From NCBI GenBank assembly GCA_964036045.1, contig OZ038378.1:3906001-3970000 (forward strand): a DNA stretch of 64,000 bases. The letters are read 5' to 3'. Origin of the DNA: Eutreptiella sp. 'Long Island Sound 2002'. Its lineage: Eukaryota > Protista > Euglenida. Under the pieces are notes generated by a model that was not told where the DNA came from, made no database searches, and worked only from the letters and a program-made list of their open reading frames with translations. Below are positions 24,401-27,400 of this stretch, in pieces; within the stretch, counting starts at the first letter, position 1, and each line of letters starts with the position of its first letter. The position numbers and the translations under genes are program-made.

Positions 24401-27400
24401 AGGGATAAATTGGGGAATTTAAGGGCAATTAGCAATATTCTTGCCTATATCAGAAGATTATTGTTACATCCGAACCCCTTAGGCCACCGCGTTCCTACCT
24501 ACCTTCAAAGAGGGTATATCCCCCTGTCACACAAGTACGACCTTGTCTATGCATGGTGACTCCTTGTTACTATCATTTTTCTGACCACAGTTTTGGGATC
24601 AACCATGTAAGCAGATCCACAGTCGCGTCCCCGAACCCCACTTGTACACAGTCCCAGGTCCCTGCGACACACACCGTACAATACCATTCACTCAATACAG
24701 CCCGCACTGCGCAAGAGAGCTCGAGGTCAAACCCCATACCCACCGACCTCCCAATTCCCCATCACAGTTATTGATTGTGCTGGGCGCTTTTCTGGCCGCA
24801 GCGTGTACAGCGCCTCCATACCTTGCAGTCGTCTTGCCCAACTGGAATGGGTTGCCACCCGCCATTCCTTGATTGTTGTTGGCGCGGAAGAGCAGGCCCA
24901 AACCGAGCAAAGTAATCAGGGGACCGGCCAAAACGCTGAGCACAGACCAGATGCTGGGGGCCTCTTCGGTCACCACCGTCACCTGAAACAGGCAGACGCG
25001 CTCGCAGCGGCGCAATGAGCCAACCAACCACCTTTCACTTGTGGACAGCGTGTAGACAGCGCGCAGAAACATCCCAGACATGGAACAACAAGTACCACCT
25101 CCCAGAATTTCGAATCTTGCATCGCAGCTGCTAATTTGTTCGGTCACTCAACCGGGGGCCAGAACAAATTAGCATTGCACCCCACAACTTCCATTACATG
25201 CAGTGACTCACGGGAACGAATTAAAGCCGCACAAACAGAATTTTTGTCTTGGCGCCTTGACCACTGACCTACTGTCACGACTAGCACTCTGGCAGCCACA
25301 CTGAAAAAATGTTCTTGGGTGGCATTGTTGATTGGACCCTCGGGTATATTCTGGTGGATCCTGGCTGGGTGGGTTGTGCCCACCAGTTGCGCTGAAATCC
25401 GTGGAGGGATAACTGAATGCACGTACCACGCAAACCGACATGCCGCCCAGTTTTGGCATGTGGGCGGAAGTCAAAATTCCTATGCTGGTCAAGCTAGACG
25501 CTGCACACCAATCAATCGTGAACTAAATCACGGAGACTACAAAACTTGATTTGTGCACGTGCTTAATCACCGCAATGAAGCCAATAATTTTGCGGACCAC
25601 TTGCTACGAAGCATCTGACGTTTTCAAGCTGATCTTCTCCCGTCGTAGTCAGTAGCTTGATCTTCTCCCGTCGTAGTCGGTAGTTGTGTTTACAAAGCCC
25701 CTAAAAACGGTGATACTGTCGTAGTCGGTAGTTGTGTTTACAAAGCCCCTAAAAACGGTGATACTTTCTCGATTAATGCGTGTCTCCTCTTCATCATTCC
25801 AATGGAGGAGAGGGCGACAAGGATGCCCAAACTTGTGGATCCTTCTTGACCGCATCTAGCATTTTCTCCACGGCTGTGCCACTCAACAACTTCTGGACTG
25901 CATCTCGCATTGTCTTTCGGGCTGTGCCACTCGACAACTTGTGGACCGCTGCCCACCGTCCACCATTTCTAAGACTCCAGTTGCATCTTGGCTGCTTCAT
26001 GCTTGGCCATTCCACCCCATATGGGAGCCACTACCACCAGTATCGACAACGCAGTTTGCAAGCTTTGGCCTTACCATCTGCAACCTGCCATTTTTGGCCA
26101 CTTGGTTCTGGAAACCGGTTTAAAACGGATTACACATTTGACTTTCCAAAAAAAAAGTTTTACTGAAACCTGACGCAGTGTTGTCAACAGAAGTAGACAA
26201 AGGCAACAGTGGAACCTGCCTGGGTGCTTACTGGCGAAACCCCAAGTGGCTGGAGTTTATTTGGAGCAGTTCTGATTTCCCATCCACCCGCTGTACCCAC
26301 AAGTCTGTTGTGGCGAGTAGAGCTGTGAGTGACGCAAGAAGAAAGGCCCCGTGAGGGGCCGCAGAAATTAATCCGTCAGCCACCGAGTGGCCGTTGGATT
26401 GGGGTAATTGGGTAGTTTTCAACTAGCAATTTCCTCAGGCTTCTCTTAAGAGATCATAAGCTCTGAGTAATTCCCGAGCGCAAGAATATCCCACACACAG
26501 GGCACGACGACTTCAATCACTTGGTTTGCGTGTATCGAATGGTGGTCAGTCTGGCGGTTTCCAGTGATAAGGGATAAAGCATGATGAAGTATCCATGAAT
26601 GACAAAAGGGAGGGGGTTGTTTTTTTTTCCACAAAAGGGAGGGAAAAGAAGAGAGTTTGCTGCCAACAAATGCACATGAAAAGTGAGTTTACCCACGGCG
26701 GGACTCGAACCCGCAATCCCCAGATTAGAAGTCTGGTGCCTTATCCATTAGGCCACGCGGGCAAGCTGATGCATGCCTCGTAGTTACAGGACTGAGACAG
26801 CACCGAGCAGTACCAACAAATTACCAAGGGATCAATGTGGCAGCAACGCAGTGTCAGGAACGCTGCACGTGTTCGACCACTGTTCTTCAGTGGGTGGGCC
26901 ACAGAGGGTTGCGGTGCCCTCTAGAGAGTGGCATGGCCAGTAGTGGGCCATTCCGGGGCTACAACACCCCCGTCAGCTGTCACAACCCACCAGGGAAAGG
27001 AAAAGGAAGTAGAGAGGGAAATATAGGCCAAGGAGGGAGAGGAAGGGCACAAGGAGGCCAAGGAAGGGTCCAAGGGAAGGGCAGTAAGTGGCGATCGGCC
27101 TATTGGCGCCGGCCAACTGCAGACCAAAACACACCACGGTATCATACCAAACCCCGGTTAGACCATAACTATAACCATAACCATAAGAAGCAACTGGCGG
27201 GCAACAGTGCAGCAGCCACAACACCGCACGACCAGTGCTCTTCGGTGGGCTACAGAGTGCATCCAGAGAGTGCCATGGTGGTGGACTTTGTGTTCAAAAG
27301 TGGCCCCGCATGGCGACGGGGTAGTAACTAAAACGATTTTGGGAGCGTGTGCATCACTCCACACCTGGACGCCCTTCTGCTCCATTTCATCGTAAACTGC

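Follow-up and report, generated by a model that had tools for sequence, protein, structure and literature searches.

A tRNA-Arg(UCU) gene and a U4 snRNA gene as same-sense neighbours within a long FtsH intron of a euglenid

In kinetoplastids, the sister group of euglenids, small nuclear RNA (snRNA) genes use RNA polymerase III (Pol III) together with the boxes of neighbouring tRNA genes. We know of no description of how euglenids transcribe their snRNA genes. The locus considered here lies within a stretch of 64,000 nucleotides (nt) from Eutreptiella sp. 'Long Island Sound 2002' (assembly GCA_964036045.1, contig OZ038378.1, positions 3,906,001 to 3,970,000), which is referred to below as the window and whose own numbering is used throughout. 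On its minus strand, a long intron of an FtsH-type protease gene contains a tRNA-Arg(UCU) gene and, downstream of it in the same sense, a U4 snRNA gene. An earlier note on this DNA had proposed that the pair forms one cassette, in which the tRNA gene acts as an upstream enhancer, a dicistronic precursor is made, or U4 is processed from the intron. On balance, we lean, without great confidence, towards a different reading, i.e., that tRNA-Arg and U4 are two separate small-RNA genes that are neighbours within a long intron.

Described linkages of small-RNA genes

The snRNA, U3, and 7SL genes of the kinetoplastids T. brucei, Leishmania, and Leptomonas are accompanied by a divergent tRNA gene or tRNA-like element, the A box of which lies ~104 base pairs (bp) from the snRNA start, and a tRNA-Ala gene that lies 211 bp upstream of L. 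major U2 adds to the expression of that gene (PMC4950102). The account of these tRNA boxes in the earlier note was correct. The window resembles this system in that a small nuclear RNA gene of a euglenozoan-like genome has a tRNA gene close by on its upstream side. Unlike in kinetoplastids, however, the tRNA gene stands in tandem with the snRNA gene, its A box lies at about -263, and no tRNA-like element is found between the two genes.

Linkage has also been described for the U3 small nucleolar RNA (snoRNA) genes of E. gracilis, the partners being tRNA-Arg or U5 genes (Charette and Gray 2009, PMC2784804). As in that species, the small-RNA genes of the window are apparently multi-copy, have diverged flanks, and are linked to other small-RNA genes. 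The linkage to tRNA-Arg and U5 that the earlier note mentioned is thus published, but in a different arrangement. The E. gracilis tRNA-Arg has the anticodon UCG, is present twice, and lies downstream of U3 in convergent orientation across a spacer of 209 bp, whereas the window case involves U4, is intronic, and has tRNA-Arg(UCU) upstream in tandem; neither a U4 linkage nor an intron is described in that study (PMC2784804).

Same-sense arrangements are found outside this group. For example, Tetrahymena U3 has a same-sense tRNA-Lys gene ~500 bp upstream, dicistronic tRNA-snoRNA genes transcribed by Pol III have been reported for plants (Kruszka 2003), and the tRNA-5S dicistrons of Yarrowia lack a terminator after the tRNA and separate their two genes by 4-17 nt (PMC2566860). 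The window shares with such Pol III dicistrons the order of a tRNA gene followed by a same-sense small-RNA gene. It differs from them in its spacer, which comprises 202 nt with four runs of four T (T4), whereas the dicistrons have spacers of a few nt and lack a terminator after the tRNA. In general terms, the locus is a small-RNA gene linkage of an already-known kind in a euglenozoan-like genome.

Identity of the two genes and of their host intron

Both small-RNA genes are genuine and intact. At gathering thresholds, Rfam gives only two matches in the entire 64 kb window, namely the tRNA and U4, and the sole tRNA found there by ARAGORN is tRNA-Arg(tct) (26689-26763, minus strand). This gene has the features of a nuclear tRNA-Arg(UCU) gene, i.e., a cloverleaf (70.3 bits), A and B boxes, and a T4 run at +8, and the earlier description of a canonical tRNA gene with a TTTT terminator therefore stands. 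The A-box consensus is TRGCNNANNGG, to which the A box of this gene conforms. On the antisense of the tRNA (26689-26762, plus strand) there is also a sub-threshold Rfam match to Plastid-ycf2 5'UTR (36 bits, cut-off 65.7), which is probably an artefact of a tRNA-derived model.

The U4 gene matches RF00015 over the full model (positions 1-138 of 138) with 72.4 bits against a cut-off of 46 (E 4e-14), and the claim that it is structurally complete has thus been borne out. In the Rfam alignment, the kink-turn (K-turn) of its 5' stem-loop, with a 3-nt bulge plus tandem G-A pairs, is present, and GCU/UAUGA/UCU...AGA/GA/AGC fits the K-turn consensus. When a 22-mer from the U4 core was scanned against metagenome contigs, six loci were obtained (L001-L006), each with a U4 gene. 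One of them, L006, provided a U6 sequence as a proxy, the window itself containing no U6. Cofolding of the window U4 with this U6 in ViennaRNA yields the canonical Y-shaped duplex, in which stem II (U4 nt 1-16), the 5' stem-loop, and stem I (nt 60-67) are formed, so that the U4-U6 pairing suggested earlier as a check is seen with the proxy.

In the alignment of the seven U4 sequences (the window and the six loci), the U6-pairing strands are invariant, as is the Sm-site octamer AATTTCTG (7/7); compensatory changes are found in 11 of the 42 predicted pairs, including those in the stems of the 5' stem-loop, and no pair is broken in the window U4. Within its U tract, the window Sm site AAUUUCUG has a C. 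Because the same octamer is present in all six related U4 genes, this C is a lineage trait rather than a sign of decay. Within the first 107 nt, the U4 of L005 differs from that of the window by 1 nt. The U5 of the same locus resembles the published E. gracilis U5 primers (local alignments match 14-24 of the 24-26 letters of each primer), and its differences in the stems are compensatory; together, these two resemblances link the window to euglenids indirectly. The intact U5 and U4 genes of L005 adjoin a U6-like stretch (L005:187-291, minus strand; 22 bits) in which GATACAGAGAAGATAAGCATGG is kept and the stem II strand is lost. This stretch is either a truncated U6 or a chimera; it was set aside as a cognate U6, being truncated after the ACAGAGA/AGC region.

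The host gene can be recognized from the minus-strand open reading frames (ORFs) that flank the intron on both sides and contain the hallmarks of FtsH, such as a Walker A motif, an AAA domain, an N-terminal domain, and a transmembrane region with a Gly-rich linker after it. The intron borders are read straight from the minus strand as GT at 27364 and AG at 24983. Indeed, the intron is removed in RNA-derived contigs from two runs that belong to different studies (X4, an estuary metatranscriptome, and X8). In these contigs, 24979 is joined to 27362, 2382 nt are skipped, and the ends of the skipped segment read CT..AC on the plus strand. The contigs agree with the window without a single mismatch over four consecutive FtsH exons, and GT-AG ends are found in all of the introns that they cover (3/3). 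Based on the Rfam strands and the splice joint, both the tRNA-Arg(UCU) and the U4 gene are sense to the host intron, as the earlier note had stated for an ftsH intron spanning 27364-24983. A further short FtsH intron of 166 nt is implied at 28338-28503, where the loose end of the mRNA contigs at 28337 matches 28504-28533 exactly.

Copies, signals, and the relationship between the two genes

Measured from the start of U4, the A box of the tRNA gene lies at -268 to -258 and its B box at -224 to -214 (centres at about -263 and -219), both in tandem orientation. The intervening spacer extends from 26488 to 26689, which confirms the length of 202 nt reported earlier, and it contains all four T4 runs, the first of them 8 nt past the tRNA. 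A relaxed Rfam scan of 26100-26900 (E up to 10) found no tRNA-like element in the spacer, and no B box was found there with up to one mismatch. Four T4 runs in a spacer that contains neither a tRNA-like element nor a B box argue that the tRNA and U4 are separate units. If so, tRNA-Arg(UCU) would be an ordinary Pol III unit, with the A and B boxes inside the gene and a terminator 8 nt past it. U4, in turn, would probably have its own promoter element upstream, near -58, and a pyrimidine-rich flank, or else trimming as far as the Sm core and the 3' hairpin, would probably set its 3' end. The tRNA gene would not be required in cis in the kinetoplastid manner and would, at most, help to keep the chromatin open. 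It is this independence of the two units, together with the promoter element, the copy number, and the polymerase used, that we infer.

The related loci are consistent with such an arrangement. The U4 genes of L001, L004, and L006 resemble that of the window, in that their 5' domains are near-identical to it, they share its Sm site, and their 3' flanks are likewise rich in pyrimidines. However, in these clusters U4 has U1, U2, U5, U6, signal recognition particle (SRP) RNA, or 5S genes as neighbours and no tRNA gene, and the intronic setting is seen for the window only. More generally, U4 is clustered in L001-L006 with U1, U2, U5, U6, SRP, or 5S genes, not with tRNAs, which suggests that small-RNA genes generally tend to lie together rather than that a tRNA is required. 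In L003, the only relative with enough upstream sequence (603 nt), no tRNA is found upstream of U4, even at E up to 5. Thus, a U4 gene without a tRNA neighbour, which the earlier note regarded as a sign of incidental linkage, does exist at the locus of a relative. The clusters of L001, L004, and L006, which comprise U1, U2, U4, U5, U6, SRP RNA, and 5S, are compact (~2 kb) and occupy both strands.

Contigs from DNA-type runs, compared with the window at 85% likeness, allow the two genes to be considered as repeats. A variant contig (X2 record 5 and X6 record 19) spans 26154-26488 and differs from the window by 18 substitutions and 3 insertions or deletions, all of which fall at 26215-26335 and none in U4; X6 record 19 covers the entire U4 gene, and X2 record 5 covers its 3' 91 nt. 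The divergent flank of this paralogous contig comprises 193 nt downstream of U4 and is about 10% diverged. At the flank substitution rate, the probability of finding no change in 141 nt is ~1e-6, and an unchanged U4 beside a diverged flank indicates that selection or gene conversion keeps U4 constant. Another variant contig begins within U4 and has 8 differing positions and one deletion in the 50 nt upstream of it.

Summed contig depth, which is by the tool's own warning a poor measure of copy number, amounts to 246 over U4, 84-447 over the 1 kb that follows it downstream, 179 over the tRNA bin, and 46 over the spacer; the baseline is 35-48. In addition, DNA contigs end within the tRNA gene at 26733, which is 30 nt inside it and agrees with k=31, and also at the 5' end of U4 (26488). 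These depths suggest that the tRNA and U4 are each multi-copy in the genome and that U4 heads a repeated segment of ~1.2 kb; summed depth would correspond to about six copies of U4. They also suggest that the stretch between the tRNA and U4 occurs at this locus only, most of the spacer being apparently single-copy. One contig, with about one third of the local depth, has deletions of 1 nt and 16 nt in the spacer, at 26620 and 26645, and looks like an allelic variant of the locus. Within the repeated segment downstream of U4, there are perfect or near-perfect tandem duplications of 48 nt (25670-25765 and 25842-25949) and one of 28 nt (25630-25683). Apart from these internal 48-nt duplications, no terminal repeats bounding the tRNA and U4 were seen; no bounding inverted repeats were found, and a mobile tRNA-U4 unit was rejected on these grounds. 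Pfam gave no match for the ORFs in the repeated 1.2 kb or upstream of the tRNA. A scan of the genome contigs collection with the U4 22-mer gave no match, and neither did a search of the protein collection with the spurious ORFs over U4 and the flanking exon, so these searches provided no further U4 locus and no orthologous FtsH intron.

With regard to the promoter, the motif CC[AG][CT]AA precedes all 18 snRNA and SRP genes in L001-L006, U6 included, at -57 to -64 in L002-L006 and at -74 to -82 in L001. This suggests that U6, SRP, U1, U2, U4, and U5 may share one promoter type in the relatives. The motif may be reminiscent of the plant upstream sequence element (USE; TCCCACATCG). The plant USE is common to snRNA genes transcribed by Pol II and by Pol III. 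In its narrower form, CC[AG]CAA, the motif precedes each snRNA or SRP gene of L001, L004, and L006, at ~-60 in L004 and L006 and at ~-80 in L001. In the window, the best match to the motif in the whole spacer is CCACCA at -58, i.e., at the same distance from U4 as in L002-L006, and the sites of the three nearest relatives lie at -57, -58, and -59. This match gives a moderate indication that U4 stands alone as a unit. A further sequence resembling the snRNA motif, CCACAT at -78 of the tRNA, was considered and dismissed, since a match with up to one mismatch is expected in about one third of 100-nt stretches.

Downstream of U4, no T4 run is found before a T9 run at 26156-26148, 191 nt away, and the earlier observation that none follows U4 directly is accurate. 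The pyrimidine-rich flank CCTTTCTTCTT is identical in the paralogous contig, whereas the next 37 nt (26299-26335) are about 35% different, which suggests that this flank may act as a 3'-end signal. In four of the relatives (L001, L002, L003, and L005), T4-T6 is found no more than 8 nt from the 3' end of U4. The flanks after U4 are solely of the TTCTCCTTCTTTCC type in L004, and those of L006 are T/C-rich and do not contain a T4 before about +12. In one DNA contig, 26156 is joined straight to 26348. With only 23 letters on its short side, this joint is weak, and it hints at another U4 copy with a T run right at the 3' end.

Several observations weigh against two independent units. The argument from separate repeats rests on contig depth, and other U4 copies may have another tRNA upstream. 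The match at -58 is weak, with 5.5 bits compared with 9.2-14.1 in the relatives, and it has a C where all 18 related sites have an invariant A; moreover, a background rate of 0.36% per position gives ~2% for a match within 2 nt of the expected place. RNA contigs gave no support for expression of U4 or the tRNA, these being contig-only runs, of which four metatranscriptomes are recorded as RT-PCR-selected libraries and the others have no library record. The most direct objection concerns chance. The E. gracilis assembly contains 4882 tRNAs and 165 snRNAs in 2.37 Gb (PMC11252322), and if these counts apply, the expectation for any one snRNA gene of having a same-strand tRNA no more than 300 nt upstream is ~3e-4, or 0.05 cases genome-wide, so that a non-random association of tRNA and snRNA genes is possible. 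Such a low chance per snRNA gene favours the idea that U4 depends on the same-sense tRNA gene upstream of it to act as an enhancer or to open the chromatin, with TFIIIC on the B box of the tRNA gene, as a euglenid counterpart of the tRNA-dependent snRNA promoters of kinetoplastids in another geometry. Close linkage of tRNA genes to snRNA or snoRNA genes is a known euglenozoan theme (PMC4950102, PMC2784804), and the B box of the tRNA-Ala gene at 211 bp, a distance to be compared with 202 nt here, contributes about half of the expression of L. major U2. However, in the tandem orientation TFIIIB would be placed on the distal side of the tRNA, at a distance of ~300 nt from the start of U4. The kinetoplastid layout, divergent with an A box near -104, fails because there is no divergent tRNA or tRNA-like element near -100; furthermore, the spacer looks single-copy whereas U4 looks multi-copy, and L003 has no tRNA in the 603 nt upstream of its U4. 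For these reasons, together with the T4 runs, the proposal of one functional cassette is not supported; of the enhancer idea, the kinetoplastid form falls away, and a role at the level of chromatin or as an enhancer is unlikely while keeping a real chance of being right. It is more doubtful still that euglenid snRNA genes as a rule have a same-sense tRNA partner a few hundred bases upstream, the TFIIIC site of which is needed for their expression. If this were true, it would represent a tandem version of the kinetoplastid tRNA-dependent promoter and would point to an origin in the euglenozoan ancestor.

The mismatch at the invariant position of the -58 element can also be read as a possible sign that this U4 copy is weakened. 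In that case, the window would contain an intact duplicate that is little or not expressed and is kept identical by gene conversion, while the working genes lie elsewhere. The lack of a T4 run after the window U4, compared with the T4-T6 of L001, L002, L003, and L005, fits this idea, as do the DNA contig of the same organism that seems to join the U4 3' end to T9 and the lack of an RNA contig on U4, although the latter is uninformative in contig-only and partly RT-PCR-selected libraries. Nonetheless, the 141 nt of U4 are unchanged beside a flank that has diverged by about 10%, and L004 and L006 likewise lack a T4 run directly after U4; on this evidence, a silent copy appears improbable. Far less probable is a shared precursor, in which either a dicistronic Pol III transcript of tRNA and U4 is cut by RNase Z, in the way of the plant tRNA-snoRNA or Yarrowia tRNA-5S genes, or U4 is processed from the excised FtsH intron, in the manner of intronic snoRNAs. 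The tRNA, U4, and the host intron are all in the same sense, and no T4 run directly follows U4, as such a precursor would allow. The dicistronic form is, however, made unlikely by the four T4 runs of the spacer, which start 8 nt past the tRNA, and by the short, terminator-free spacers, mentioned above, of the known Pol III dicistrons (PMC2566860). As for processing from the intron, the sense orientation is the only support and has a prior of 50%, being necessary and far from sufficient. An intron-derived U4 would lack a 5' cap, and an uncapped U4 would be unusual; in addition, U4 copies appear to exist with other flanks. Intron processing would entail a gene with a trimmed 5' end and no promoter of its own; upstream of U4, there is the weak candidate element at -58.

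If, as we prefer, tRNA-Arg and U4 are two separate genes, the locus still supplies a U4 gene that is complete, apparently under constraint, and mapped in its flanks, a specific tRNA gene next to it, and a candidate motif at about -60 that is common to related snRNA, U6, and SRP genes. Should the pairing recur genome-wide, it would link snRNA expression in euglenids with that in kinetoplastids; should it not recur, these would be ordinary small-RNA genes in the long introns of a large, repeat-rich genome.

Coordinates of the features and neighbouring repeats

Table 1. Features of the tRNA-U4 locus in window coordinates.
Feature	Position	Strand	Remarks
Host intron	24983..27364	-	Conventional GT-AG, 2382 nt; FtsH-type protease gene
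tRNA-Arg, anticodon UCU	26690..26762	-	73 nt, without intron; Rfam RF00005, 70.3 bits, full model
A box of tRNA	26745..26755	-	TGGCCTAATGG, tRNA positions 8-18, read from sequence
B box of tRNA	26701..26711	-	GGTTCGAGTCC; sole exact GGTTCGANNCC match in the 64 kb window
T4 run, expected Pol III terminator	26679..26682	-	8 nt past tRNA 3' end; stem plus T tail
Spacer	26488..26689	-	202 nt between tRNA and U4; looks single-copy in DNA contigs
Further T4 runs in spacer	26647-26644, 26636-26633, 26607-26604	-	Three, beyond T4 at 26682-26679
Candidate snRNA-type upstream element	26539..26545	-	CCACCAT at -58..-52 of U4, weak match
U4 snRNA gene	26347..26487	-	141 nt; RF00015, 72.4 bits
U4 stem II strand	26471-26487	-	Part of U4
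U4 K-turn 5' stem-loop	26434-26467	-	Part of U4
U4 stem I strand	26421-26429	-	Part of U4
U4 central stem-loop	26372-26398	-	Part of U4
U4 Sm site	26362-26369	-	AAUUUCUG, U4 nt 119-126
U4 3' hairpin	26347-26358	-	U4 nt 130-141
Pyrimidine-rich 3' flank	26336..26346	-	CCTTTCTTCTT, 11 nt; first paralogue difference at 26335
T9 run, first T4-or-longer after U4	26148..26156	-	+191
Raised-depth segment	25390..26540	-	~1.2 kb, approximate borders; U4, ~50 nt upstream and ~1 kb downstream, with variant contigs

Other parts of the FtsH gene are also repetitive. In the same intron, 180-470 nt upstream of the tRNA, the summed DNA-contig depth rises to 24,000-56,000 at 26940-27233, compared with a baseline of ~40, and by this measure the copies of the stretch number from hundreds to over a thousand. 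The stretch holds GGAAGGGC-type repeats of 12-21 nt and occurs in contigs of RNA runs as well. The next FtsH intron contains a second repeated element at 24294-24587, with a summed depth of 940-2700 and many loose contig ends at 24394-24448.

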